NCBI RefSeq assembly: GCF_963853765.1 | Contig: NC_088857.1 | Location: 55,366,001 to 55,430,000, forward strand | DNA from: Magallana gigas | Lineage: Eukaryota | Reading direction: 5' to 3' | Length of the DNA stretch: 64,000 bases | In this document: positions 7,457 through 50,849 of the stretch, in pieces | How the letters are laid out: every line of letters starts with the position of its first letter | How positions within the stretch are numbered: the first letter of the stretch is position 1 | Program-made: the position numbers and the translations under genes | Notes under the pieces: model-generated | Database searches by the model: none | The model's input: only the letters and a program-made list of their open reading frames with translations | What the model was told of the DNA's origin: nothing

Positions 7457-7585
7457 NNNNNNNNNNNNNNNNNNNNNNNNNNNNNNNNNNNNNNNNNNNN
7501 NNNNNNNNNNNNNNNNNNNNNNNNNNNNNNNNNNNNNNNNNNNNNNNNNNNNNNNNNNNNNNNNNNNNNNNNNNNNNNNNNNNNN
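7457..7585. other. Assembly gap
   Basis: 129 consecutive N. Confidence 1.
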
Positions 7586-27000: not shown

Positions 27001-30000
27001 AGCTTTCGTGCTTGATGTTTTAAGGATGGCGGACCCAGTTCTATTTGCCAATGGGCAGATACATCGCTTAGCTAGAGGGAGTGATTGTTACAAAAATTGA
27101 AATCTCAATACATTGTATTACGTCACAATCACTAAAACTCAATGAAAAATCACTTATGAAGCAATATATAGCTGTTTAACGTCATCAATTCACACTTTAT
27201 GTAGCGCAAGTACTGGCTGACCTTGCTATAATTTAACATGCCAAAATATGCTTTTCAACATTATTTAAGGGATGTTAAGTACATGTACTGTGGTAAGTTT
27301 TTTATTAGTACAAGTTAATTATAACCATCTATATAAACTGTAGGTTAGTTTACAGAATTTGAGCCAGTGTACAAATCATTTAGATTTTGATCTGCTTCAA
27401 TACTCGTATCGAAAATAGGGTAAAACGGACCTTGTGCTTAAGTTTGAAGTATTTTATCATACACAAATGTTCAACTACTCTGTTAGTTATTTTGTTTCAT
27501 AAATCAGCCTCTAAATAATGTACATCAACTTGTCTTAGAGTTTGCGCACTACTTCTCATGAAAAATTGGAAAAAGATATAACAACAAACCGCACATTGGC
27601 ATGTGCCTCCGTCAAAACAAAGTCAATGGCATAGTCATTTTTTAAATGATGTTAATTCAAAATCATCATATAAGTGTTATATTTTAATTTGAATAGAAAA
27701 TCTATTGCAGAATATTTTTTAAATAATTTTTTCTCTCACAAGAACACTTTTTCCCCATTATGTTCAATTGAAAAAAAGAAGTAACACTAACATTCTTTGA
27801 AATGGTCACTACTAAAAATCTAATTCGATTTTTATGTTATTTTTTGATTGATTTTTATATATCTTTAGTAACTCTAACTCATATAAAATTTTCATGAAAA
27901 TCACTCTTGTAGAAGTAAATTGGGTCCGTCATCATTAAATGTTGCTTTCTCTTTGTCCAGCAAGCTCGTATTTTTCTGTCTGTGTCCAATAAGTTAATGT
28001 TTTGTCTGTCTCCTGCAATTAGATATTGATAGGATTTAAGGTAGCTCGCGGGTTTACCTGCTTGTGAGAAAACCTACCTTGAAAATTTGTCCACGTGATC
28101 CATAGGTTTTATAGTTTTATTTCTAAAATTTATTTAAGATTCGTCTGCGCGGTAATAATGTTATCGTGTTTCAAATACAGTGTCATTAATAAAATAAAGC
28201 AACGCCATTTCAATGAAATATATAGTAAAATGCACATTTTAACCAAGAAACGCATTTCAAAACTATGCTCCAAACTTTTAAACGATTCAGACGAAATTAA
28301 TCATACTCAACACAAAAACTACAGAGGAGATAATTATGAATCTATTCATAAAAAAATATCAGTATGTGTTCTCGGCCAATTTTTGGCAAAAAAACTTTAA
28401 AGATTTAAAAGATTTCTCAAAACTTTATATTTTCATTAGCCTGACGTCATCATTTCCTTACTTCTTAGAACACCAAAATTGAAATGCATTTATTGACAAG
28501 ACTAGCTGTTAAACACATTTTAGAACATGTTAATGCTTATTAGACATTATTGTGAATGTTATTAAATGCAATTAATGTAAGGCTGTAAAGATACAGAAAA
28601 TTGCTATTTTTGTTTTTATGAAACTCTGAGTCAATCAATGCAAAAATAAAATGCCAGGCAACTACTGACAATATAAGTAAGTAATCGAATAAAACATTTC
28701 TCTCAAGCCAAAAGAAATTTAAGAATTTAATCGGTAGTACAGATTACGGAAGTTATAATTGTAAAAAAAAAAAAAAGCGAAGTTAATGCATATATACATT
28801 CTATTTTAAAACATTACTTTAAATGGAAGAGTTCTAACGCACACTCATTCTTTATCTTTATAGAACAAAATGTGACAATGTATGTGACATCTTTAAATTT
28901 TCAGCACTTGATATTATAAATCTTTGTATAAACCGTCATAAACCTCATATAAGCTTTTTAAGATATTTTCTTTTATACTTCTAAATATCTCATTTGTCAT
29001 TTTAAAATAAAATTATGAGTTTACTATGACGGTCTGACTCAACTCTTTACGTCGATTCCTATTGTGACGTCAGAAAAACCCGCGAGCTACGTTAAGGTCA
29101 GACGACACGTTCCTAGAGCATCTTTTTTGTATCTCCTTGTAATAAAGAGTTCCAATAAAAAATATTAATTTTATGATTATTTTTAAAATGATTCAAATTT
29201 ACTTGTATATAACTATATGTATAGATGGCCGAGTGGTTAGAACCTTGGCCGCTCACTGCCAGAAGCGTATAGGTTCTAGAGGTCGTGAGTTCAAAGCCAT
29301 GCCCGGCCGAGATAGAGTTCCAATATAGTGAATTTTGCTGTGCTGTATACATGTATTTGTTTATTTTTATATCAGCAATTCAAGTGTATTTTCAAGAAGA
29401 TTATATAGGAAATTGCATACTCTAGTATTTTACAGAAATGCCTGGTATGTTACCCTAATTTTTTGCAAGAAAGCTTGTCAAAGTAGTGATAAAAAATTAA
29501 CAAATTCCTGGAAAAAGTTATACACCGTATCACATTGAGGAACGTGTCGTCTTACCTTAAGATGAATTTGTTTCTCTATCTCCAGCAAGCTAACAGTGAG
29601 GTGACAGTGGTGGCTTTCCTGATCTTCCCCACCAAGACCAACAACTTCAACGTGGAGTCCCTGCGGGGCCAGGCCATCTCCAAACAGCTGAAGGAGACCG
29701 TGCACCACGTACAGACACAGATCGGCAAGAGGATCTTTGAACAGTGCCTGAGGTACAGTCTAACTTTAAAACAGTGCCTCGGATAGGGTCTTATTATAGA
29801 TCAGTGCCTCAGGTATGGTCTCATTATAGAATAAAAGCTCAAGTATGGTCTAATAATAGAACAGTGCCTCAGGTATGGTCTCATTATAGAATAAAAGCTC
29901 AAGTATGGTCTAATTATAGAATGATAGCAAAGGTGTGGTCTAATTACTGTGGAATCATTAAAATTCGTGGTGGCTCAATTTTCGTGGTATTCGTGGGTAG

Positions 30001-33000
30001 CCCTCGCCCACGAAATTACATCCTCAACGAAAACTAATTATAAAAGGTTTGATTTACCTACTGAGACTGAAAACTGACTCATCCACGAAATTAGATCCCC
30101 ATGAACAAGCAAAAAACCAACAATCCACAAAAATTGGCCCCCACGAAATTAAATGATTCCACAGTATAGAACAGTGCCTCAGGTATGGTCTAATTATGCC
30201 TCAGGTAGAGTCTTACTAAATTTGGAACAATGGCTCAGGTATGGAATAGTTGGAGAGGTAGAGCAGTCCCTCAGGCACATAAGATTTGTAGGAGTTTAGC
30301 TATAAAGGAATACTGTATACAGGGAAATATTGACCCTCGTTTTATTTTTGCCCCATTTGTCCTCTTTGTCAGCAGGCAGATTTGAGGCTGTATGGATTTC
30401 AATGTCACAAGTTACCTCTTTTTAAACACAACTGTGTTTTGGAGAATTCAAGACAGGGCGAAACTGTTTGCAAATGTAGAAGGGTGAAAATTACACGGGG
30501 CGAAAATAATTCTGTATACAGTATTGTAGTCAGGTTAACAGTGTGTTATCAGAGAGAAAACAAACTAGATTATTATACTTTCATGTTAAATACTGAAATC
30601 TGATTGGTTTAGACACAGTTGATAATCCGTTTTATTACCCTCAGCATTAGCAACACACTTGGCAACGGGTAACATAACGAATTGTTACATGTGCGTAAAT
30701 GATGCGCGTACGGTTCGCAGTAGAATTCAAGTCATTCCTGTAGAAAAACAGTTAAGTTTTCTTTAAAATTGACATTCAGTATAATAAAATAAATAGTGCC
30801 TGTTTGGGAGGATAACAGTTGAAATCGACAACCCTCGAAAACCATTGTCAACCTCCGCTTCGCGTCGGTTGACAATCGTTTTCTTGGGGTGTCAGTTTCA
30901 ACTGTTACCCTCCCAAACAGGCACTATTTATATAATGTTACTCAGTCATCATTATTTATATTTTATCCATTAACAGTAGATATTAACCTGTAAGAGTACT
31001 TTTCTGATTACAGGGGCAAAATTCCAACTGGAGATGAAATTCTTGAACAAGAAGATATAGTGAAACTTAAGAGGTGTATCTACTCTGCTCAGGTACCATA
31101 TATCTTTGTAAAAAGAAGATCAAAGCATTTGTACGATCAGCTTGTAATTCATTTTTAAGCAGACAAAGAGGAAAATCAATTCATAACAGTTATGTCTGTT
31201 GCATCTTTCAGAGAAACAGCTTACCTCCTATATGTACGCACAATGTTAATGAAGACGCAAACGACCAAATCCTTAATGCCCTTCGACGATGTCAACTTTT
31301 CAACAGAAAAGAGGACAGAGTGAAGGTAGGATCATCTTGTGTTGGTTATTTTCTAACACCATTAACCCTTCAAGATTAAGGGGACTTGGACAAATTTAAA
31401 TAAAATTTTATTTTTTTCGATTTTAATGTTTAGAATGGTTGATATGGGTACTTTTAATGCTTTGTCAAATTTTGAAAGTCAAATACTGAATCTTTGTTTT
31501 GTAAACAAATCCCGAGCTTTGTTATGGTTTACATATGTGTTTTATTGGTACATGTATAAGTCTATGTGACTGTATTTGTGTACTGTAGAGATCTGCAAGC
31601 AAGATCATTGTAAAAAGGACAAATGAGAAAAAAGGTTTTTTGATTCCTGCTTTAGATTCTGAATATTATCCATATAAATTAAAATTTTATTTCATGGAGT
31701 GCCATGAGATGCTAATATTCAAGATCAATTTTAAATTGTTATGATATACAAGAATATCTAAGGGAAACGTGAATAGCTAAGGAATTTGTACCAAACCTCT
31801 GACTCTGACCTTCAGTGATGTATCTGTGTTAACACTTTTTTTCCAGGTTGTATTTCACCCCGAGTTCCTGAACTCCACCAACCCTTTGTTTGGCCTTGAC
31901 TACGAGGACTTTGTCCGGGGCTGTCACCTTGGGGTGTTCGCTTCGTACTACGAGCCCTGGGGCTACACGCCAGGTCTGTCACATTCTCCTTGCTTTCATA
32001 ACCCAGGGCAGCAACTACAATTTGATCTTAATACATCTGTCCAAATATCAGTATTTACCATAAAAGAATCAAGTTTTATGTCTTGTTAAGTAGTTATTAG
32101 ATGATACAGTATACACTTTCTGAAAGAAGGATGCTGAATGTCCAATACAGCTTTTGTCTGCAATTAGAAATAATAGATTAGATACAAATATGTGGATACG
32201 GTATAACGGGTATTTATTACTTGCTGCAAGTTTTATAAATTTGTAAAATTTAAACGCATGAATTTTCACAGAAGTTCAGAAACACAAATTTTCATCTGGT
32301 ATGTATGAGAAAGAGAGAGAAAAGAGAGAGAGATATTTTTGAAATGGAGTTGTCTCTCATTGTATCTCCTGTAAATTCAAGATGTGCACATGTTGTACAA
32401 CAATGATGATACCTAGATTGACAGGAATAAGTAAAGGGCACATTGTATAAGAAAATGTGGTAAATAAACATGTCATAATAGTTTAAGGACTTGTTAACTC
32501 AAAACAATTTTCTGAACATGGGATTTGTTTGTAAAAGCATTCAATGTGTTTACAAACATTGCCACGGCCAGAACTTTTTACCTCTGATTATTTTAATTTT
32601 TACAGACATACACAATTCGTAAAAATATAACGTGTAAAAATTCAATGGCCCCATTTTAACCAAAATTCGTAAAAGATCACTACTGTAACAGTAAAAATTA
32701 TACATTTATTGTCAAAGTTTATAATTTAGTTAATAATTCAATATTTCTGGTGTTTTTTTTATCAGAAAATTTTATTTATACTTCAACTCCCAGATACATG
32801 TATTTTGTAATGTACCTTGATAAGATTTCTTTCCAGAGAATGAGATTTTTTCACATGACAATTGTACATGTACTGGACAACCTGTTTTTGAGATGTCTGT
32901 GTCTGTTTTAACTGTTCTCTCTGACCCACTTTCAGCTGAGTGCACCGTGATGGGGATCCCAAGTATTTCCACGAACCTCTCGGGCTTCGGCTGTTTCATG

Positions 33001-35469
33001 CAGGAACACATCAATGATCCCAAGTCCTATGGACTCTATATTGTAGACCGCCGATATAAGAGTCCAGACGAATCAATCCATCAGCTGACTCAGGTAACGA
33101 TGGGAACCAAGCATGGAATGACCCATTTATTTGTAGGCCCCCTGTCACTTTCTTTTTTTTACAGCATGCCAGCCTTTCTTATTTTATTTGACAGGATAGA
33201 GTTGTCTTTCCCTGTATTGCATGCATACTTATGAGTTGGCTTCACTAACACCTGAAGGCTTTGAATGTTGATGTTCTTTTAAGTCTGTATTCTCTTTGTG
33301 TATTTAGAGTTTACTGACAGATTCTCTCTCTTTTGTCGGATTCTCCAAGAATTTACAATAAATTTCAAAGTGTTTTAATCATTAGTTGAACATGAAATTT
33401 CACATGGATTTTGAATATTTTGCAATTTGTTAGGCAATGGAAATGATTCAGAACAAGAATATTAAAATATGAAGTTCATGCTTAAGAATTGCATTTTTAA
33501 TTTGATTGGTACCTTTTTTTATTAAATGAGTACCTGGTATCTGAACTTACGTAAATAAAGTCAATCAGATTTGACATGCCTTCCTTCTCAAGTTGTATAG
33601 AGACAGTCATTAGAGAGAGGCGTCTGGGATGTGTCTGTCTTTGTTAAGCCTGATGGCCTGGGTTAGTGAGGAGCCTTGTATAAGACGCACCCCCTGATTG
33701 ATCATGTCCTGTTTAACTCTAGCGGAGTGTACGGTGATGGGAATACCCAGCATCACGACCAACCTGTCGGGATTCGGCTGTTTTATGGAGAATCATGTGA
33801 CGGACACGCAGTCGTATGGTATTTATGTGGTTGATCGGCGCGAATCTAGTCCAGACGAATCTATCCATAAACTGACTAAGGTAGACAGCTCTGTCTCCAC
33901 CAGGGGAATGTGTGGGTCTGTCTGTCTGTAGTATCTTTCTTTCAGTGAGGACTGGATCTGTCCATCTTTCATTCTTAATGTCTAACACTGTTTGTGTAGT
34001 TGTGACTTAATATATCTGTCTGTAGTGTCTTACTTTCAGTGAGGACTGGATCTGTCCATCTTTCGTTCTTAATGTCTAACTCAGTGTAGTTGTGACTAAA
34101 TATACCTGTCTGTAGTGTCTATTGCTGTCTTCTTGTAGTGTCTAGATCAGTCCATCTTGTCTGTTGTATCTACGGCTGTCTTATTATGTTTGTCCATGTG
34201 CTTGTGATGAATAATTCAACTGTTGTATAGATTTTGCATGTATTTCACTAAATCTTTCTATATAACTGGTATTTCTTGCTTAACATTCAGTTTGCATTCT
34301 TAAGTTAAGCTAGCTTCCTTTGTGATAACCATGTAATATATGAAAAAATTCTTGTTCATTCCAACATGTTTGGATGGAATCAGACATGAGCAACTATTAA
34401 AAGTCACTTTTTTACAGTCATCAAAAGCAAGAGTTTAATGTTCATCACAGTAAAATGTATTAAAATCTTGACTTGTAACAAATGCAAAATTGTCATGGTT
34501 ATCAAGTTCAACAAGTTTTTTCATAAATTGAATTTCTTCTAACTCAATTAATGTTGTCTTATGCATTAAATTTTAAACATAACTTTAACATAATTTTACA
34601 TTTGATTTGGATTGTAATACAGTGTCTTAAAATTATTCATTTATCAATTTTTTTTTACTTTTACTTTTAATGTTTAAAAAATGGTAAGCTTTAGATTGAC
34701 TGTCTTATAATCACTATTTTACAAAATTTCTTTAAAAATTACAATACAGTTTTACTACACAACATTCATCGGTGTATAATTTCTCCTTCCTTTGCAGTAC
34801 ATTCATGATTTATTCTTCCTTTTCAGTATATGTATGATTTCACCTGTTTATCCCGGCGACAGCGTATCATTCAGAGAAATCGTACGGAGCGCCTCAGTGA
34901 CCTCCTAGACTGGAGGAACCTGGGAGTGGTGAGTGGAAGACTACTTTCACTTTCACTTTTATTGATGGCAAAGGATTCAATGATAAAGATTTATTACAGA
35001 AGATGACATTAATTACTAACTAACTAATGCACTGTATGTAAAGATGTAGAATTCGACTCTTTTTTTTTTTTTCATTGATTTGAAAATTTGTGTACTTTGT
35101 GTGAGTTAACACAGATATGGATGTATGAAATATTTTGTAGACTTTTTAAAACTCTTAACTATTGGACAGATGTTAGTGAATTTCTTTTCTTATGTACTCT
35201 ATTATTTTTGATAGTACTACAGAAAAGCCCGCCAGATCGCTGTAGCCCGGGGATACCCTGACCTTGCTGCCAAGGAGGAGGAGATCCTACAGGAAAAGAG
35301 GTTCATGTACCCTCGGCCGGCCTCCGAACCTTCCTCACCCTCGGCCTCGCGCAGCTCCACCCCAGCCCCCTCGGAACATGGGGATGATGAAGATGACGAT
35401 ATCGACGAGGATGAAGAGAATGCTGAAATGAGTTCTAACCCAGAGTCCGACATGCCGATGTTTAAGTGA
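21050..35469 (+). CDS. GYS: Glycogen [starch] synthase (GT3 family), about 696 aa
   Basis: Exons: 21050-21194, 23515-23696, 24232-24423, 24759-24944, 25428-25572, 25906-26023, 26528-26648, 29586-29752, 31014-31092, 31212-31325, 31847-31973, [32936-33093 or 33723-33880], 34827-34928, 35215-35469. Total 2091 nt in frame. Motifs: [30 protein letters not shown], catalytic EPWGYTPAE, regulatory [15 protein letters not shown] helix, C-terminal phosphosite cluster [20 protein letters not shown] followed by an acidic tail, and N-terminal RRRNS. Confidence 0.97.
27024..27934. mobile_element. TTAA-flanked TIR element in GYS intron 7
   Basis: TTAA|GGATGGCGGACCCAGTT ... AATTGGGTCCGTCATCA|TTAA. Confidence 0.7.
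28040..29091. mobile_element. TTAA-flanked TIR element in GYS intron 7
   Basis: TTAA|GGTAGCTCGCGGGTTT ... AAACCCGCGAGCTACG|TTAA. Confidence 0.8.
29096..29556. mobile_element. TTAA-flanked MITE (family K1, copy 2) with a tRNA-like core
   Basis: TTAA|GGTCAGACGACACGTT ... AACGTGTCGTCTTACC|TTAA; shares its left TTAA with the 28040-29091 element. Confidence 0.85.
29740..30270 (+). repeat. 30-bp minisatellite beginning at the GYS exon-8 donor
   Basis: Unit approximately AACAGTGCCTCAGGTATGGTCTAATTATAG; 7 units at 29740-29949, interrupted by a MITE, with decayed units resuming at 30167. Confidence 0.85.
29947..30164. mobile_element. TA-flanked MITE, copy 2, inserted in the GYS intron-8 minisatellite
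   Basis: TA|CTGTGGAATCATT ... AATGATTCCACAG|TA, with perfect TIR ends and a TA duplication. Confidence 0.8.
30313..30521. mobile_element. TA-flanked MITE in GYS intron 8
   Basis: TA|CTGTATACAG ... CTGTATACAG|TA. Confidence 0.65.
30572..30934 (+). mobile_element. Non-autonomous repeat with a long terminal hairpin (family H2, copy 2), in GYS intron 8
   Basis: Colinear homology with 15821-16184, same hairpin. Confidence 0.75.
32936..33093 (+). CDS. GYS: Glycogen synthase exon 12a (alternative copy A)
   Basis: ttcag|CT GAG TGC ... CTG ACT CAG|gtaacg; 158 nt; encodes [53 protein letters not shown]. Confidence 0.93.
33723..33880 (+). CDS. GYS: Glycogen synthase exon 12b (alternative copy B)
   Basis: ctctag|CG GAG TGT ... 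CTG ACT AAG|gtagac; 158 nt, same phases as 12a; encodes [53 protein letters not shown]. Confidence 0.85.
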
Positions 35470-35760: not shown

Positions 35761-36036
35761 CTTTACAATTGTTACAATACTAGACAGTCTTTACGATTGT
35801 TACAATACAGTCTTTACGATTGTTACAATACTAGACAGTCTTTACGATTGTTACAATACTAGACAGTCTTTACAATTGTTACAATACTAGACAGTCTTTA
35901 CAATTGTTACAATACTAGACAGTCTTTACAATTGTTACAATACTAGACAGTCTTTACAATTGTTACAATACTAGACAGTCTTTACAATTGTTACAATACT
36001 AGACAGGCTTTACAATTGTTACAATACTAGACAATC
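35761..36036 (+). repeat. 28-bp minisatellite (about 10 units) downstream of the GYS stop codon
   Basis: Unit CTTTACAATTGTTACAATACTAGACAGT; followed by AATAAA at 36062 and near 36083. Confidence 0.9.
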
Positions 36037-39000
36037 TCTAAAAGAAAAGTTTATGTGATTGAATAAAAAGTTTATATGATGGAATAAAAATCTATTTATT
36101 CTAGTAATCATACAATGAATTCAAGAGAATCATTATCTGCTACATGCAAGGTAGGTTTAAGTAACTCTTATGTTGAAGGACTGTGTTTGTTCAAATCAAA
36201 AATCATAAATAGAGATATATATAAATATTCATGAACAACTTCAAGTGCTGGTAGTTCCAATTTTGAATTGATTCTGGAAAAGTAACATTCTGCTAGATCT
36301 GTTAATAGATTTTTACCCAAGTTTAGCTCTATGATAAAAGAAGAATTTTTGAATGACATTTATAGGTTTATGAATGTTTATTGTAGTTCAGCAGGTGGTA
36401 GCTAGTCAAACAATGTTCTGCTTTAGACTTTCAACCCCCCCCCCCCCCCTCTCCATTAGTGAAGTTCAGTCAGCTTTACAGATTTTGATTGTATTTTTTA
36501 ATTGTAATTTAATTTCAGCTGAATGGTGTTATTATGGTATCCTATTTGTCAATTAATGTATTGATCAGATATTCTAGTTAATCAATAATTTTGTAACCCA
36601 GCTACCTCTAGCAATCAACCGCCCAAATGCAACTGAAAACAACAAAAGCATTTAGTCCAATCTGGCTGCAGCTCTTAATTTGATAATTTCTTATGATTAA
36701 TTTTAATGAAAGTTGATAAAAGTAAATGATGTGATACATACAAAATGTTACACAGTGTTGGATATAGATTGTATGTTTTTTGTTTAGTTCAGAAACTCTT
36801 AAAACAGTTGTTTTATAAAAATGAAGGGTTATTTTTTCAAATTCATTATGCCCAAGTTAATAATTGCTGATTGTTATCATTGATTGTTATATTAATTATT
36901 GACTATGTACACTGTATAGATTTTGTGCCATCCTTTGACTGTGTATATAAATGATGCATTCCCCCTCTCCCTCTGGCTGAGCTTTTGTTGTATAGTATAT
37001 ACTACAGTGTGTACTATACAGATCTCACCTACATGTAGATATACACACCTGTGGTTTGTCAGCGTCAGACTGACCTTGTAGTTTCCTCAGGTGTAACATC
37101 TCTGTGATCCTTCACTCTCCACCTCTGGTTTCAGTATATACGGCCAGTCTTTACATATTGTGTGTGAGAGAAACAGAGATGATTACTCTATTACTGATCT
37201 ATAACAAATAGAGGGATGTCTGGCTTATTGAGTTATTTTTTTGTTTATCTGTACAAAGTTGATTGAGCTTGATTGATCCTGATTAGATGAGTATAGTGCG
37301 TTGATTTTATGCAGTAAAAAATTGTTGTAGAGTATTCTTTTTTTTAGATTGTTTTTCAATGCATGCATTATTTTATCAAGTGCTATTTAAAAATGTTACA
37401 ACTAAAATATCAAATGAAAATGACTTACAAAAAGAGAATTCTTGAGACTTTCAAGTGTACAATGTACTCAACTCTTGTGCATTCTAGTAAGCTGTTTTTT
37501 TGGTTGGCTCTCTAGTTATTCAGCGACTAGAGCTTACATATGTACATCTTCATGGTAGATAACTCTGCATTATATCCAGCCCATATCTTGGAATAAGGTG
37601 TATATAGCTGTTATATTAGCTAAATCTCTGTGATTTTCCTCCTTTGTGTATATTTAATCCTGTGTGGAGAGTTTTGCCTCTGTCACAGTGTTTCTGTACT
37701 GGTTTATGACTGTGTAAAGTTCTGACGCCTGTGTTTTTATTTTATTGTTTTGTTTTGTATAGACAAGTGCAGCTATCTCTCCTTTACAAAGGAAAAATGA
37801 GTGCTTAATGTTTTTGAAAATTTTACTGAGTTTATTAGCTGAAAACAAGATTCATTTTCTATTGTAAGATTGAATTGAAATGAGTAGAAGTCACAGAGAG
37901 CTTGCATGATGTCATTTTTGCGGACACTAGGTGTATAGATAAGTGCTTCCATAGATTTCTGTGATAATTGTTACATACAGAGTTCTCCTCCTTTTATGAT
38001 GTAAGCAAATAACAATGTGATCAGATTTAATGCAATTTAATAATATTGTTTCTGATAAACAAACCTCACATAAATAACAATATGACAAGGTTTAATGCTG
38101 ATGTAATATTATTGTTTCCTATAAACAAACCTCACATACCAGTGTGTTAAAATGTGGCTTATTGAGTGTGTTGTAAATCCCCTAATATATGATACATGTA
38201 AGCATTTTCTGTTTTCGATGTGGTATAATTATACGATATAAATATATTGTTAGCACATACCTGGTATCTGCTGTTTTATTTAGTTATTTGAGCAAATTAT
38301 AACTCTCTTCGTACCCGATAGTTTATTCTTAATAAAACGCTGGTCCATTTCTGCGTTACAGGTTGACAGTCCAAACTGATCAACTAACAGACTGTGTCAA
38401 AACTCAATGCCTGTCGCATGTAGCATTCGCATCTGTTAACTGTGCCAAAGTTTGGCGATGGCGATGTATGTTTACCTTAGGACCTTATAATTGAATATTT
38501 CAGTTTACATGTTTCTGAACGATTAATTGTGAATAACACCCGCCTCCTCCCCCACCGGCCTTTCAACTGGAGAATGGAATAAATCAAAACACACAAACTA
38601 GGTTATGTATGCACTCACTTTGTTATTATTAGTAAAATGTACTTGGCAACCTAACTGTCCTACATGTACATTGTAGCTAAGCCACCAATTTTTTCAAAAT
38701 GGATTATGGAAATAGTTGCTAATTTCCAAAAACCCCAAAATTGTATTTTAAATTCATGAAATCTCTAACATGTGGTTGTATTTATATATTTTGTTGGCCA
38801 ATATACATCAAACCTAAATGAATTCAGTCACCGCTGGCCTTTCACCGTTTACATACTAAGACCATAATAAGGTAAACGATTGGACCATAGATCATCTAAT
38901 TCTGGTACGAAGCAGGTGCCATCAATTAATAAATATGTTAGTGCGACCGAATTTACTGTTACAGGTGACCTAATTCTGTGGGGAAATCCAATTTGACGAT

Positions 39001-39964: not shown

Positions 39965-40700
39965 CAACATGGCAAAAAACAATTTAATCAAATAGTATGG
40001 CAAAAACAACAACAAATAGTATGGCAAAAACAACAATAAACAGTACGGCAAAAACAACAACAGACAGTATGGCAAAAACAACAACAGACAGCATGGCAAA
40101 AACAACAACAACAGACAGTATGGTGGCAAAAACAACAACAGACAGTATGGCAAAAACAACAACAGACAGTATGGCAAAAACAACAACAGACAGTATGGCA
40201 AAAACAACAATAACAGTATGGCAAAAACAACAACAGACAGCATGGCCAAAACAACGACAGTATGGCAAAAAAACAACACACAACACACAAACACAACAAC
40301 AATAAACAGCATGGCAAAACAACAACAGACAGTATGGCAAAAACAACAACAGACAGTATGGCAAAAACAACAACAGACAGTATGGCAAAAACAACAACAG
40401 ACAGTATGGCAAAAACAACAACAGACAGCATGGCAAAAACAACAACAGACAGTATGGCAAAAACAACAACAAAAAGTATAGCAAAAACAACAGCAAATAG
40501 TATAGCAAAAACAACAATAAACAGTATAGCAAAAACAGCAACAAATAGTATGACAAAAACAACAATAAACAGTATGGCAAAAAACAAAAACAAATAGTAT
40601 GGCAAAAACAACAATAAATAGTATGACAAAAAACAACAACAAATAGTATGGCAAAAACAACAACAAATAATATGGCAAAAACAACAACAAATACCATAAC
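39965..40700. repeat. 24-bp minisatellite (about 30 units)
   Basis: Unit ATGGCAAAAACAACAACAGACAGT; it explains the five overlapping low-complexity ORFs in the track. Confidence 0.92.
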
Positions 40701-42990: not shown

Positions 42991-45182
42991 CATTTATTAT
43001 CAATTATTTTCATATTATTTTCTTTTTCATTTTATAATTCACATAAAATTATTTCCATTTTTTATGTGATACAAATCCATTCTTTACCTCGTTCCCTCTT
43101 CGGTGGTATTTGCACGTTTTCACTTACCGATCGTTGGTTGCACGCACATGTAAGATCATCAAAGCGACATCAGTATCATTGGTATTTTAGATGGGTTCAC
43201 TATTATTTTTTATGTAAAGCAATTGTTGCTTAAGGTAAGAGCAAAGGCATTCATTGTAAACAATCCCACTTCTGTGGCAAATTGGTTAAACGTGAACTAT
43301 TTTTGCAAAGACACATAACAAAAACAGTTATAAAACGTACCCGAACCTATTGTTACAGTCTTTCTTTTTTATATAAATGTAGGCCACGTCGTTACATCTT
43401 TCTAAATAAACGCCGCATAATCAAATTCAGACATTATGAATTGGAAAATCCATTGTCCAAGTGAATATGCTCGATACCAATATTTTCTATGACAACTTTT
43501 GATGTTTGTCGATGCCTGCTTACATTGAAAGATTTTGACGATACATCGGTAAACATCCCCTAAACTTCGCGTTTAACTCAGATTAAGATATGTAAAACAG
43601 TTATGCCACGTTTTTCTAAATCTTTAAATTACATAAGGGAATTATGAAATATAAATACACATTGATGATATATAGATTCTTATAGAACAACAATTAAATA
43701 AGAAAAAAATCTTTAATTCTTAAACTTTTGTTTTGGTTTCAAACGAAAACTAATCAAAATCAGTAAGGTGAGGCAAATTCCCTTCATTGACTATATTCGA
43801 TTTTTTAAATAATGTCATGACAAGACAATTAATTATCAAAGCGAACATATTTATATTAATATCGAGTACGTTTAAATGTTAATTAGTATCACTTATAATG
43901 ACTTTAAAATGCCATCCAGGTCGTTCTCGGAGTGATTTTGTCATAACCTGACAGCTAGGTCCCCTGTTTTTGATTCAGGGAATCTTAAAGTTTAAATTAA
44001 TACTGTTTAATTGAATCGTAAATATCGATGTTATAAGGTCAACGTGCTAAATTACAATAATGCAAATTTGTGTAAATTGAGTGTAAATGAAACATGTGCA
44101 ACATGAACTATTCAATGGGATAAAACTAAAGACGGTGATTATGAAGTAATTAACTAGATTATGTTAATTTTATAAATCCGTAACGATTACAGCATACATC
44201 AAGCCATTTACATGATCACGTGACCCGCTAACTTTACTACATACACATTATATTTATGAATGACGATTTGATCAAGAATATTCAGGACAGAGATTGTAAA
44301 TTGAAATATATTAATCTTTCGGATATATCTTTCTGGTTGCAATGTATAGTTACCTTTCCTCTCAATTTCATCTTTTCGATATATTAATGTTAAAAATCAC
44401 ACACAGACCGAGGTCGTCTTTAACCTTCACACAATATCCAGTTCACTTAATTTTCGGTTCAAAGAAACCTGTTACCTCTTCATGTATGTTGGGGATCTTT
44501 AAAAAAAAAGATTAACAGGAATCGATGACTTTTCTCTGGTACACATTTTCCCGTAGCTTCATCACTTTGATGTTGCGGACCAGTGTTTACAAAACATAGA
44601 TACGAAAGTTCTGACTGTTGTGCACAAACATCAATAATATCTTAAATAAAAAAAAAATTAAAAATACAAAACAAAACAAAACAAAACGAGGATCTCTTAA
44701 AGTAACCATTCAATAGGAGTTAGATAAATGTAACTATCTACGAAGTAATAAATTCATATTTAAGGGTCGTATCCACGTGGTTTTACATGTATTTGTGCAT
44801 GGTATTAACTTGTGAATCCAACTTTTTCATTGATTCATGTTGTTGAAAAAGAAAGCAGGAAGTGCAGTCCGTCAACATAATGAAATGAGTATAAAAATCT
44901 AAAGATGTGATTTAAAAAAAAGAAAGATAAATATGCCCAATATACAAATACAAGAGAGTACTACATGTACTGTACCGGTGTCAAGTAAAATTTCGATTTT
45001 TTTTGGCCTTATTCGGGACAAAGATAATTCTTACACACACTTTTATAGGAAAATTCAAATATTGTATGATGTGTTTGTTTTTTCTTTAAAACATATTGTT
45101 TTTACCTTTAACCTTCAGGTTTTTTTTTTACCTTTAACCTTCAGTTTGTTTTGACCTTTAACCTTCAGTGTGTGTAGTCACT

Positions 45183-45916
45183 ATGAGGACCCCGCTGCTG
45201 GTCTGTCTGTTAGTGCCGCTGCTCTCCACGGCCCGTGGTCAGTCGCTGGAGGCTGTGGTAAGGGAAGCCGTGGAGTCCAGCTTCAAGATGCCCAGGAACA
45301 TGCGCAAAGCTCTTATACCAGCAGGTAGGTCAAGGCCACCTCCTCTGTGTTCAATAAACTCCAGTGAATCCTATTTTAACATATTATTTGGTCTCAGTGT
45401 GAAGAAAATGACTAGTTTGCTGGTTGGAAGGCATGTTTTTGTCTTTAGAATATTTATCTATCTTCCTAGTTTCTTTGCAATTAAAAAACTAAAAAAACTA
45501 ACGATAGATGGCTTTTTATCTCCGAATTAAAAGCATTCTGGGTCCATAATTAGTACGTCTGTTCATTATTATATTGAATAAACACATTTTTTCTTGGCTA
45601 TAGAGGTAAAGGAAAAGAAAAAATACCATTATATCAACCGGGGAGCCATGGCAATCAACGCTCTCAATAGGTTCTCGCAGAACAACGCACCGGAAATGAA
45701 CATGATGCTGGATTCAAGATCCCGGATGGCCTCACAGGCTGCGCAGAAAATCGCTAGAAGGTTTGTTTCGCATTTCTTGTTAAAAGAAGATGCTTATCTG
45801 TCTCGCAAGGGCAATGCCAATATTTGAATACGTAAGTTTTCTTATAATGCAGTAAGAAGGACATTTTTCTGTTAAGAAATACTCTTTATAAAAAGGCTGT
45901 TTCACGCACTTTTGAG

Positions 45917-46001
<85 letters not shown>

Positions 46002-49000
46002 ATCATAGCTCTTTAATTCTTGACAAAATCTTTTTCCAGTCGGCCAGTGCTTGCCAAGGCACGAGGGCGCGACGATGCGGCTCACATGGTGGTCTCCGAT
46101 CCCGTGATCTCACAAAGCTTTCAGCGCGCCATGTCGCCTGTGTGTTATGAGATTCCGGTCTGCAATCCCCAGGATCCCTACAGAACGGCGGACGGTTCCT
46201 GCAACAACTTGTTCAATCCCATCCTCGGCAAAGCGTTTACTCCTCAGTCCCGTATTCTACCCAACGCCTACGATAACTGTAAGTCTGACTGCAGTCAAAA
46301 GTTCAATTCAAATCTTAAGAATTCATTAAAAAAAGCACATTCACTATGGAAACACCAAAAGATAGTTCTTGTAAAATGTGTTTTTCTTCCGAGTTATTTC
46401 CCTTGTCCGCAATCTTGTAGATCAAGTCGGTGAATTCTTCTCTCTGAGAGACCAATTTTTTAGAAAAAAAATTCAGAATGTCGGGGGAAAAATTCTTATT
46501 AATGGTAATTAAAAAAAATATTAAAAATAGTTTATTCAGAACAAACCGTTTTACTCATTGACTGTCGTTTCCAGCAATCGACCTCCCCAGGACGAAGGAC
46601 AGTAACGGGGATCCCCTCCCTAGCGCCCGCATGGTCAGTAACCTCATCCTGTCCGGGTCCAACCCGGTCAGTTCCACCTTCACGACATTCCTCACCCACT
46701 TCGGGCAGTTCATCGATCATGACGTCATCTCCACTCCTTCCATGACAGGTCGGTTACATTGTATTTCACCCTTCAGTAGCCTTATTTACCCTAAAGATAG
46801 TTCATCGTTTTCTATGCATTCTTCAAGCTTTTTGAAATGCAAGATTGTCATTGCTATAAACGTAAATTGTAAGCATACTGTGTATACTTATTTCTCTCAG
46901 AGGGTGACCCGCCTAATCCCGTGTTCGACTGTTGCTCTCCGAACGTGTAAGTATTTGAGTTAGTAGTTTTCAAGTGACATTCTTAGTCATAAACAATATA
47001 AATAAAGTACTTATTTTCAATTACACTGAAAGCTTCAAGTAATAATGACCAGATGAATGATGTCTTCAACCAATATCAGTACTTCATTTGTACTATATGC
47101 GTCCACTGCTAGTGATGGTCTAAATTGTAATACACTTATTTTATGAGAAAAAAAAACGTGACATATTTCGAGATGTTAAGGGTTTTTGACCATGCTTTTT
47201 TAAATCAAAAATTGTATTTTTAATACGTGTATATATTACATATCTTAACATTCTCAAAAAATTCTTTTTTGCAACAGAAATAAGTACGCCTGTTTCCCAA
47301 TCAATGTCCCCGACGGTGACTCCGAATTTTCCGGAAAGTCCTGTATGAACATGGTCCGTCACGCGGCGGCCGTGCCGCTGGACTGTAACAGCGGTAAGCT
47401 CTTGTATGTAAGGAAGGCTGTATGGTCATCAAATTACCCATCAGATCTGCATTAAAAATGAAAAAAAAAAAAACGGTTTTCAGCGAGATATCATTTAGAA
47501 ACGAAAAGCATTTTATATGTTAGCTTTAAACTTAGAATGTATTTATGAATTTTTTTTAAAAAAGTTTCCTTCTAAAAGATATTGATAGAGTCTAAAAATG
47601 TCAGTAACGGTCGTTAATGCAATTGCTGTACACGTTGGATGTTTGACAGGTGTCCGTGAGCAGCAGAACCAGAGGTCGTCCTTCATTGACGGCACGGCGC
47701 TGTACGGATTCAACAGGGAGAGGGAACTACTGCTCCGTGTACGAAGTATGGCCGCCTCGTGGCTTATATTCCTATAGAAAAGGGCTCATTTACCCTTAAT
47801 TAAAGTACTGCATTCTAATGTTTTATTGGCGATGAATATTTTCGACATATCATTGAACATGTTTTTTTCATTCAGACGGCGGTCGGCTGTTAGAGAGCGA
47901 CAGAATCCAAGGCCTCCTCCCTCGCTCCACGTGTCCGGCGGGAATCTCCACGCCCTTCCATTGCTTTATAGCCGGTAAGATTAGTCTCCATTCTCATTAT
48001 ATGCCAAACACATTTTTGAATTAAGAATAACGTTCAATTTTAACAAACTGATTTTCAATTTTCTTAACAAGGTGACCACAGACAAAGCGAAACCCCAACC
48101 CTCACAGTTGTACATATCGCGTGGTTACGACGTCACAATCTGATAGCAGACGCCTTACGTACAGCAACTAATATAACAGACGATGAGACTCTATTCCAGG
48201 AAGCCAAGAGAATTGTGGTCGCAGAACTGCAACACGTGACCTATAGAGAATTTTTACCTGCAGTCTTAAACTACAGATTCATGCGTGTATTCAATTTGCG
48301 GACACGTTTCTCTGGTCATAGCAATTATTACAACCCTAGTGTGGACCCCAGAACCTTCAATGCGTTCGGAGCCGCCGTGTTACGTATGGGACACACGATG
48401 GTCAGAAATGAAGTCGGGCACGATGACGGGCGAGGGCGTGTCCAACAATTCAATCTTAAGGATCATTTCGAGGATCCAAACCTCATGTTCTCACCACCGC
48501 ACGGATTCGAGCACATGGCTCGTTGGATGGCAAAGAATGGGAAATCTCGGGGTGATCATGCCTTTGTGGAGGGACTCAGAAATAAACTGTTCGAGGGACC
48601 AGCTGGTCCATTCCCCGCGGAAACCGCGTCCTTTGACCTCGGGGCTCTGAACATCCAGCGGGGGCGGGAGCACGGACTTCCGGCGTACAACCGCTACAGA
48701 GAGTTCTGTGGACTGAGACCGGCCGCCCACTTCAGTAACAGATTCGGTGGACTAGTGGACCATTCCATAACCAACGCTGCCAAACTAGCGCGTGTGTACA
48801 GGTAACAAACCCTTTCTATCAACAATTCACTTAGAGTGATTTCCCTTATATGGTTTTTTTTGGTAATGTGTTTTATATTAGCAGATGTTCGCGTCAATTT
48901 ACACAGTATTAATTGTTCTTTCTTTGCTTTAATAGATCCACAGACGACATTGACCTTTTTGCCGGTGGAATGTCGGAGACCCCCGTCCGGGGAGGAATCC

Positions 49001-50849
49001 TGGGCCCCACCTTCTCCTGTCTGTTGGCCTACCAGTTCTCTCTGTACAAACATGGAGATAGGTTCTGGTACGAAAACAACGACCACGAAAATCCACTCAC
49101 TGCTTTCACCGGACGTAAGAATATGAAGTTTATTATTATTATAGCGGTTTATGATCAATACATTAATATGAATGCTATTAAAGTGAATCATACAGTGTAT
49201 AAGACTATTTAATAAAATATTTTAGATGATAACATTTTCTTTTTTTTAAAGCACAACTTGCTCAACTCAAACAGATAACTCACTCCAAAATATTATGTTC
49301 CGTGCTTAAAGACGACAAAGGCTCCCTGAATTATCAGCCAAGACTGATGGAACATCAAGATAATTACAGGTAAGTTTAAAAGGGAGATTATCTGTGATAA
49401 GCTGGACATGTTTACAGGTAAGAGTGAGATTATCTGTGCTAAGCAGAAATGTTTACAGGTAAGTATCAGAGTGAGATTATCTGTGCTAAGCTGTAAATGT
49501 TTACAGGTAGTGTAAGAGTGAGATTATCTGTGATATGCTGGAAATGTTTACAGATAAGTGTAAGAGTGAGATTATCCGTGATAAACTGTAAATGTTGACA
49601 GGTAAGTGTAAGAGTGAGATTATCTGTGCTAAGCTGGAAATGTATACAGGTAGTGTAAGAGTGAGATTATCTGTGCTAAGCTGGAAATGTTTACAGGTAA
49701 GTGTAAGAGTGAGATTATCTGTGCTAAGCTGGAAATGTTCACAGGTAAGTGTAAGAATGAGATTATCTGTGCAAATCTGGAAATGTTTACAGGTAAAAGT
49801 AAGAGTGAGATTATCTGTGCTAAGCTGGAAATGTTGAAAGGTAAGTGTAAGAGTGAGATTATCTGTGCAAAGCTGGAAATGTTTACAGGTAAGTGTAAGA
49901 GTGAGATTATCTGTGATATGCTGTAAATGTTGACAGGTAAATGAAAGAGTGAGATTATCCGTGATAAACTGTAAATGTTGACAGGTAAGTTAAGGAGTGT
50001 GGTTATCCGTGATAAGCTGAAATGTTCACAGGTAAGTGTAAGAGTGAAATTATCTATGATAAGCTGGAAATGTTGACAGGTAAGTGTAAGAATGAGATTA
50101 TCTATGATAAGCTGAAGATGTTGACAGGTAAGTGTAAGAGTGAGATTATCTGTGCTAAGCTGGAAATGTTTACTGGTATGTGGATAAGTAAAGACAATAA
50201 TACTAGTTATAAGTTAGAGACAATAACAGACAGGTGCATTTGTAAGGGCTGACTTCATGAAGGAGGATACTCTGATGATTAGAAGTTTACAGGTAAGTGG
50301 GATATAGTTAACGCATGCAATTCCATGTAATGTCATCATTTTAAAAAAATTGTACAGGATAACAATTTTGTCGTAGTATGAAAAAGAGTTAATCGTGTAG
50401 TCCACGTTATATGGAATTAATGTTACGAAGACGTTAACTTTGTTTGATATCACTTTCCAGATTCGTTGCGTGTAAATCTAACTGAAAATTAGTTTTATAC
50501 ACATTTTATATCTTGTAGAAATGAGCCACGTCCTTGTCGCCAGATCCTGAGAGGAAGTCCTATAGGATACAACTTCAAACCTTTTATTGACCAGCTTGTG
50601 TCGTTAAGAGGATCCCGGCGGGAAGCCAGAGTCAGCAGATTGGCTGCGGCCTCGTTCCGACGAGTTTCAGGAAGTTCGTCATCCCAGACAAGAAGGGCGC
50701 CTAACGCTGGGTTCAAAATCCCCAATCCGAAAGACGTGGTAGAAAACATCCTTAAATTGTCCACAAATGACAACAGAAATAGCCCTACACGCAGGACCAA
50801 CAGGCTGCAGCCTCAGTCATTTCAACGAGCCTTCTGGCAAAGGAACTGA
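45183..50849 (+). CDS. Secreted animal heme peroxidase (peroxidase-cyclooxygenase superfamily, chorion-peroxidase-like architecture), about 808 aa
   Basis: Exons: 45183-45324, 45604-45760, 46040-46278, 46575-46748, 46901-46946, 47278-47393, 47650-47745, 47876-47974, 48072-48801, 48936-49114, 49252-49369, 50519-50849. Total 2427 nt in frame. Signal peptide MRTPLLVCLLVPLLSTARG; YRTADGSCNN; FGQFIDHD (distal His, heme Asp); SSFIDGT (Ca loop); GDHRQSE (distal Arg, heme Glu); RMGHT (proximal His); LNIQRGREHGL; GDRFWYE. No LRR or Ig domains. Confidence 0.93.
45922..45998. repeat. (CT)n microsatellite in peroxidase-1 intron 2
   Basis: About 38 perfect CT units ending about 40 nt before the exon-3 acceptor. 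Confidence 0.95.
49366..50176 (+). repeat. 48-bp minisatellite (about 17 units) starting at the peroxidase-1 exon-11 donor
   Basis: Unit ACAGGTAAGTGTAAGAGTGAGATTATCTGTGCTAAGCTGGAAATGTTT. Confidence 0.92.

Follow-up and report, generated by a model that had tools for sequence, protein, structure and literature searches.

The stretch of DNA that we analysed (the window: 64,000 nucleotides of Magallana gigas contig NC_088857.1, positions 55,366,001 to 55,430,000) carries the glycogen synthase gene of Magallana (Crassostrea) gigas, and this gene holds two homologous versions of its twelfth coding exon, 12a and 12b, which an earlier note on the sequence had proposed to be mutually exclusive. The gene model, built from tblastn matches with glycogen synthase proteins followed by a frame-consistent choice of splice sites, has 14 coding exons (Table 1) and gives an uninterrupted protein of 696 aa with 12a and 12b alike. 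The 12b version is 100% identical to the M. gigas RefSeq protein XP_065939579.1 and the 12a version is one residue apart from XP_034316488.1, which identifies the window as the Pacific oyster glycogen synthase locus. The modelled exon junctions were all recovered in RNA-seq transcript contigs (L009-L018). Pfam family PF05693 matches the protein over profile positions 1-638/639 (E = 0, 1138 bits), making it a eukaryotic glycogen synthase of CAZy family GT3. The E-X7-E motif (EPWGYTPAE) straddles exons 11 and 12 and the arginine-cluster helix is encoded in exon 13; both isoforms keep both.

The two exons have the same length (158 nt), are each preceded by a pyrimidine-rich tract and an AG and followed by a GT, and lie 629 nt apart between exons 11 and 13, with no coding exon between them. 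Their phases are alike (1 in, 0 out) and they share a single open frame free of stops and indels, so that lengths, coordinates, spacing, splice dinucleotides and phases are all as the earlier note had described them. At the nucleotide level 12a and 12b are 72% identical (113/158 nt) and at the amino acid level 75%, and they find each other by tblastn within the window with E = 8e-27; no second copy of any other glycogen synthase exon was found there by tblastn. The same residue is encoded at 39 of the 52 whole codons, 20 of them with a synonymous difference, and the split first codon, which is Ala in both (G and CT versus G and CG), brings the totals to 40 of 53 residues and 21 synonymous codons, reproducing the earlier count. 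By the Nei-Gojobori method pS between the two is 0.76, which is saturated, and pN is 0.148.

The copies are 158 nt (3n+2) each, and an mRNA with both or with neither therefore runs into an early stop. Joining 12a to 12b reads Q R S V R stop, the stop being the fifth codon of 12b (codon 583) and lying 245 nt before the last exon junction, while skipping both shifts the frame and brings up a stop three codons on (codon 529), some 91 nt ahead of that junction. Translation of the model thus reproduced both outcomes predicted before: double inclusion and double skipping each give a premature stop upstream of the last exon junction, and only the inclusion of one exon or the other is productive. The unproductive mRNAs would be expected to undergo nonsense-mediated decay.

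Table 1. Features of the glycogen synthase gene around exon 12 (window coordinates)
Feature	Position	Strand	Remarks
Glycogen synthase coding region	21050..35469	+	splice-aware model, transcript contigs, PF05693, XP_065939579.1
Constitutive exon 11	31847..31973	+	phase-1 end; first Glu of E-X7-E (EPWGYTP)
Exon 12a, 158 nt	32936..33093	+	nearer the ancestral sequence; present in transcripts, cDNA Q596I1 and XP_034316488.1
Conserved intronic block GTAACGATGGGAAC	33094..33107	+	directly after the 12a donor; GTAACCATGGAAAC in the other three genera; from four-genus alignments
Two GCATG motifs (33111-33115, 33164-33168) and a conserved U-rich tract ending in ACAG (~33146-33164)	33111..33168	+	downstream of 12a
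Exon 12b, 158 nt	33723..33880	+	more derived copy; orthologues in three other genera; RefSeq isoforms
GU-rich block AATGTGTGGGTCTGTCTGTCTGT	33907..33929	+	about 27-50 nt past the 12b donor; conserved in four genera
Constitutive exon 13	34827..34928	+	encodes the arginine-cluster regulatory helix

Age and retention of the exon pair

We compared the window with the genomic loci of Crassostrea virginica, Ostrea edulis, Saccostrea echinata, Pinctada imbricata, Pecten maximus and Mytilus edulis. In all of the species each copy of exon 12 is 158 nt long, bounded by AG and GT, and open in the same phase. The four ostreid genera (Magallana, Crassostrea, Ostrea and Saccostrea) have the pair in the same order, with an intron between the copies of 629 nt in M. 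gigas, 428 nt in C. virginica, 447 nt in O. edulis and 444 nt in S. echinata. P. imbricata also has two copies, 1125 nt apart, the upstream one unannotated. Only one copy is present in P. maximus and in M. edulis, and a search of their loci for a relic of a second copy found none.

A maximum likelihood tree built on the 156 in-frame bases puts the 12a sequences of the four genera in one group (support 73/90) and their 12b sequences in another (87/95). Since 12a and 12b each cluster across genera, the duplication is older than the split of the four oyster genera. The between-genus ratio of nonsynonymous to synonymous divergence (dN/dS), where dS is finite, is 0.03-0.09 for 12a and 0.04-0.07 for 12b, with pS of 0.5-0.96, and such low ratios at saturated synonymous sites indicate that both exons have been kept as coding sequence. 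The earlier note had inferred an old duplication under purifying selection and had suggested dating it in other molluscs and computing dN/dS; the orthologous pair in four ostreid genera and the two ranges of dN/dS agree with it on both counts. It had also named, as a sign to the contrary, a lack of 12b junction reads together with the absence or decay of 12b in related species; 12b is intact in C. virginica, O. edulis and S. echinata.

The upstream copy of P. imbricata (L003:15621-15778, assembly GCA_033119305.1) is intact, with AG and GT at its ends, and is missing from the gene model KAK3095937.1. Approximately unbiased tests on 156 sites did not place the Pinctada copies: only the grouping of 12b with the second Pinctada copy reached p = 0.04, and the other groupings had p >= 0.06. 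Between 12b and exon 13, S. echinata has an intron of about 18 kb (L007:17603-35626), which measures 0.7-0.95 kb in the other three genera.

Annotation, transcripts and flanking introns

RefSeq has equal-length X1 and X2 isoforms of glycogen synthase for C. gigas, C. angulata, C. virginica, Ostrea edulis, Saccostrea cucullata and S. echinata, the pairs being taken from the 90% cluster listing around the oyster enzyme. Within each of these six species the isoforms differ only at residues 536/537-578, which correspond to exon 12, and one is of the 12a type and the other of the 12b type. Both isoforms are therefore already in the public annotation, a question that had been left open in the earlier note, and the claim that one gene yields two isoenzymes is in line with these models. 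Alternative isoforms in the NCBI pipeline normally need transcript support. Full-text searches of the literature found no published description of the glycogen synthase exon 12 pair.

An older record departs from this arrangement. UniProt K1QSC1 (K1QSC1_MAGGI, P0249; 725 aa, a 2012-era model) has 12a and then 12b, the latter entered at an internal AG (33728) five bases past its start with the frame kept, by which 51 residues of the Rossmann core are doubled. This double inclusion is almost certainly a gene-prediction artefact that is still in UniProt.

At the transcript level, the cDNA cloned in 2005 (Q596I1) carries 12a, and the full-length 12a isoform is encoded by 23 Logan contigs (2-5 kb) that derive from separate sequencing runs. 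Three of these, L009, L010 and L012, were mapped to the window; they are spliced from exon 11 to 12a to exon 13 and skip 12b, with 12a at 100% identity. A phmmer search with the 12b peptide retrieved mainly genomic open reading frame (ORF) fragments, with no spliced oyster 12b transcript among them; the contigs behind these fragments are too short to span both exons. One of the Logan ORFs covering 12b (P0010, 141 aa) shows substitutions of P by F/L, S by F and H by Y along its length and looks as if it had been assembled from C-to-T (bisulfite-converted) reads of the glycogen synthase locus. A profile made from bird glycogen synthase and the window exon peptides retrieved mostly vertebrate sequences, plus K1QSC1. 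Scoring the 12b part of K1QSC1 alone picked out no further full-length cluster representative carrying an exon of the 12b type, the isoforms collapsing into one 90% cluster, and exact-protein look-ups gave no match in an index that keeps one product per gene.

The intron sequence just downstream of each of the two exons is better conserved than that after the other donors of the gene. Among the 14 donors compared in the four genera, flank identity over positions +7 to +46 is highest after 12a (0.72) and 12b (0.65), the others ranging from 0.47 to 0.62, and 8 of 24 columns are invariant in the flank of 12a. The conserved elements downstream of 12a are GCAUG and CCAUGGAAAC (the CCATGGAAAC block), and a TGTGT(C)TGTCT(G) block is kept after 12b in the four genera. 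A GCATG lies within 75 nt of the donor of the first copy in all five species that have the pair, Pinctada included, and the motif is nearly absent from two neighbouring introns. In Pinctada it is found 21 nt downstream of the upstream copy, and a TGCATG lies about 30 nt upstream of the second, annotated copy. Rbfox proteins recognise GCAUG, and GU-rich elements are bound by factors of the CELF and RBM24 type; that such factors act here is offered as a hypothesis only. Scored with a matrix derived from the gene itself, the acceptors of 12a and 12b fall about 1.7-3.7 standard deviations below the constitutive mean, 12b being the lowest.

We also looked for mechanisms that would impose exclusivity directly. 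No U12-type sites (RTATCCTT donor) were found, the donors being GTCTGT, GTAACG and GTAGAC and the acceptors all AG. With 428-629 nt in ostreids, the intron between 12a and 12b is long enough that length alone is no steric bar to splicing, and an ACTAAC that the alignment places, conserved, in the first third of this intron is too distant from the donor to hinder it. Duplex scans and two alifold runs detected no conserved docking/selector duplex or covariation, on four poorly alignable introns that give such a search little power; the duplexes were unremarkable in energy, and neither alifold consensus fold was far from zero (-2.7 and -0.25 kcal/mol). In the intron following 12b, a 94-nt tandem repeat of 2.1 copies (33918-34113) re-copies the GU-rich/CTGTCTGT element together with a TTTCAG that resembles a 3' splice site. 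This repeat aligned nowhere in the first 250 nt of the same intron in the other three genera.

Tandem repeats are also found near other parts of the gene. A 29-nt tandem duplication (34779-34840) copies the acceptor and first bases of exon 13 (ttcctttgcagTACATTCATGAT / ttccttttcagTATATGTATGAT) and creates an extra upstream AG (+29 nt, frame broken); the downstream site is the one used in transcripts. A 46-nt repeat of 2.5 copies (23416-23532) overlaps the acceptor and start of exon 2 and places pseudo-acceptors just upstream of the real one, and a 28-nt unit repeated about 10 times (35761-36037) lies in the 3' untranslated region, where transcript assemblies break. Further downstream, before a peroxidase gene, is an array of about 29 copies of a 24-nt unit (39989-40691, 86% matches) that is open in several frames on both strands. 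The downstream neighbour itself (45168-49212, + strand) encodes an animal haem peroxidase (PF03098, E = 1e-43), and the upstream neighbour (14144-18654, - strand) matches the FAM234A/B beta-propeller weakly and below threshold (24 bits, cut-off 26.4), and also FG-GAP. The window has one run of 129 N (7457-7585), an assembly gap or masked sequence.

Isoform differences and rival explanations

Both exon peptides match human GYS1 518-568, C. elegans GSY-1 and yeast Gsy2 in the PDB (E = 1e-18 to 4e-22). The first full codon of the exon aligns to human GYS1 Glu518, so that the exon does supply the second Glu of the E-X7-E motif, as had been claimed. In the human enzyme this residue touches the ribose of UDP, and the regulatory cluster, which takes part in Glc6P binding and phosphosite sensing, consists of Arg579-591 (PMC9287172). 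The earlier description of a duplicated catalytic-site exon holds only as regards position: between 12a and 12b the NLSGFG loop, the DRR motif and the catalytic Glu are unchanged, and the differences lie elsewhere. The product with 12b only is a full enzyme with every invariant residue of the family.

Using 25 other animal glycogen synthases for ancestral states, we found nine positions that discriminate the copies, five of them fixed apart in all four genera (537, 554, 559, 561 and 578) and four by residue class (555, 566, 567 and 575). Exon 12a retains most of the ancestral states (DPKS, DRR[YF]K and QQLTQ), to which S537 and L559 have been added. Exon 12b retains the ancestral T537; its derived states are [DE]T554, V561, [ENH][ST] (566-567), K578 and, at 575, a basic residue. 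From 12a to 12b two lysines are lost (555 and 567) and two basic residues are gained (575 and 578). In an AlphaFold model of the 12b isoform, residues 537 and 559-561 are on strands, 566-567 are in the loop after DRR, and 575 and 578 are on a helix (569-584) that runs into the arginine-cluster helix (588-604). Positive charge would thus have moved from loops to the helix that leads into the arginine cluster, and we infer that the isoforms most likely differ in regulation or surface interactions, not in chemistry.

Taken as a whole, the observations are best explained by a genuine mutually exclusive pair that arose by tandem duplication of exon 12 in the single oyster glycogen synthase gene, and we regard this as very probable. 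The duplication took place before the living oyster genera split, and either copy gives a full-length enzyme. Exon choice is probably regulated rather than random, given the weak 3' splice sites and the conserved intronic element that each exon has of its own.

Several points weigh against this explanation. The 12b core was found in 0 of the 10 Logan contigs fetched from the 23 that encode the 12a isoform, and no exact full-length 12b protein is on record from transcript assemblies, against 23 for 12a, for which reason 12a appears to be the major form. The use of 12b is suggested by the RefSeq models and by purifying selection, and the transcripts seen contain 12a only. The regulatory motifs are short, and their roles as splicing-factor sites are those of candidates; the splice-site matrix draws on a training set of about 50 sites. 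Confidence in the AlphaFold model is moderate (mean pLDDT 69, and 50-88 over the exon 12 region). The Pinctada pair may be a separate event or, on the parsimonious reading, may descend from the duplication that gave the oyster pair, in a common ancestor that lived ~294 Mya (241-348; PMC10543319). Finally, the discriminating sites also vary among other invertebrate glycogen synthases, and no mention of the variable residues (human 539-569) was found in the human GYS1 structure papers searched; a functional difference that depends on sites so labile in other taxa, and unmentioned in those papers, could be modest.

The lability of these sites in other taxa speaks for a neutral, frozen redundancy, in which both isoforms are made, are functionally equivalent and are chosen stochastically, and the catalytic and regulatory motifs are indeed the same in both. 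Such an outcome nevertheless seems unlikely to us, because the four genera agree in separating the copies at nine positions, five by fixed residues and four by residue class, because a conserved intronic element of its own follows each exon, and because two copies so strongly constrained would hardly have been retained for so long unless their roles were distinct.

Under a second alternative 12b would mainly be a poison exon, the stop created by co-inclusion lowering enzyme output, so that the exon would serve dosage control rather than coding. Double inclusion does give a stop well before the last junction (245 nt), and conserved flanking introns would also suit an unproductive-splicing switch. 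A poison exon, however, needs no conservation of amino acids, yet 12b keeps 39 of the 52 residues of 12a with dN/dS of ~0.05, and the mRNA with 12b only encodes a complete enzyme with all invariant family residues, which makes this role very improbable as the main one.

It could also be argued that 12b is an unused relic or pseudo-exon, that the RefSeq 12b isoforms are prediction artefacts, and that oysters effectively make the 12a enzyme only, since the transcripts seen are all of the 12a kind and 12b has the weaker acceptor and the longer branches. However, an unused exon would have decayed, whereas the frame, length and AG/GT of 12b are intact across four ostreid genera, its dN/dS is 0.04-0.07 at saturated synonymous sites, the adjoining intron flank is conserved too and the isoforms have been modelled independently in six species; we consider this very improbable. 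The notion that the second copy is a haplotype or assembly artefact, which the earlier note had itself raised, may be dismissed: tandem near-duplicates in oyster assemblies are often uncollapsed haplotypes, and repeated glycogen synthase segments exist in other records (Acipenser P0270 and Plutella P0171), but here 28% of bases differ, synonymous change is saturated, the flanking introns are unrelated and the same layout recurs in independent assemblies of four other genera. That both copies have been kept as coding sequence rules out a decaying relic, a pure poison exon and an artefact alike.

If 12a and 12b are thus a true mutually exclusive pair, a further step, which we put forward tentatively and for which we would not claim even chances, is that oysters, and perhaps all Ostreida for some 300 million years, make two isoenzymes by regulated exon choice. 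The 12b enzyme would have an altered response to Glc6P or phosphorylation, and Rbfox-type and GU-rich-binding factors would select the exon according to tissue, season or stress.

Comparison with known systems

The oyster pair shares several properties with the mutually exclusive exons catalogued in Drosophila, C. elegans and human (criteria in PMC3228551, evolution treated in PMC9741552 and PMC9013439): the exons are neighbouring, homologous, and equal in length and phase, they are ancient and constrained, and co-inclusion breaks the frame. It differs in that exclusivity has been seen at the transcript level for 12a only. In exon clusters controlled by competing RNA structures, such as those of Dscam, 14-3-3 zeta and others (PMC6071210), one of several tandem homologous exons is likewise picked per mRNA, but no conserved docking/selector pairing was found in the four poorly alignable oyster introns.

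The closest published case is the alternative oxidase (AOX) of C. virginica, whose duplicated exon 10 was described by its authors as the first such mollusc case (PMC5589949). Both genes encode a metabolic enzyme of an oyster and have a tandem exon duplicate giving equal-sized isoforms, with one conservative and one derived copy. However, the AOX pair is the last exon, that is, an alternative 3' exon, whereas the glycogen synthase pair is internal and controlled by the frame. Stress-dependent switching is a measured feature of AOX.

Vertebrates also have two glycogen synthase isoenzymes with one type of catalytic core, GYS1 and GYS2, but these come from a whole-gene duplication and have diverged along the entire protein and its phosphosites, whereas in oysters only 53 residues vary. 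At the exon 12 positions GYS1 reads S-I/V-S-T, like 12a, and GYS2 reads S-V-T-T, like 12b, and the mammalian GYS2 segment ends in K, as does 12b. The residues that the vertebrate and oyster copies have in common are at least partly ancestral and are no evidence of a common origin.

Equal-length RefSeq isoforms that differ in a single exon-sized homologous block are also found in the nemerteans Tubulanus polymorphus (P0397/P0516) and Lineus longissimus (P0402/P0517/P0519). In this comparison, which was made between proteins only, the isoforms differ only in blocks that correspond to oyster exon 6 (~286-329) and exon 10 (453-485), rather than exon 12. To judge from the proteins these look like mutually exclusive exon pairs, and since they fall at exons 6 and 10 the events are independent of that in oyster exon 12. 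Among deposited glycogen synthases, that of Plutella xylostella (P0171) has an exon-6-like block several times as near-identical repeats, and that of Acipenser sinensis (P0270, flagged as a contaminant) has the exon 12-13 block twice, again near-identical; both look like assembly or annotation artefacts and not like diverged exon pairs.

The exon 12 pair is of the standard tandem-duplication kind, with isoforms that are already in RefSeq, and leaves the general understanding of such pairs unchanged. What our analysis adds is a lower bound on the age of the duplication, signs of selection on 12a as well as 12b, the conserved elements in the flanks, a map of the discriminating residues and three practical points for annotation. 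K1QSC1 wrongly includes both exons, the Pinctada model misses one copy, and the nemertean enzymes have comparable pairs at other exons, so that exon duplication may recur as a way for invertebrates with a single gene to diversify glycogen synthase.

Reproduction, survival over the summer and market quality in oysters all depend on glycogen content, for which glycogen synthase is the committed enzyme. Two enzymes may be mixed in expression studies and SNP associations that take the gene to have a single product. For enzymologists, a swap of 53 residues beside the regulatory helix, which evolution has maintained since at least the origin of crown oysters, is a natural experiment. Should the two forms prove to be regulated isoenzymes, they would be a splicing-based counterpart of the muscle and liver gene pair of vertebrates, in animals where the storage of glycogen is a key trait in both physiology and commerce.

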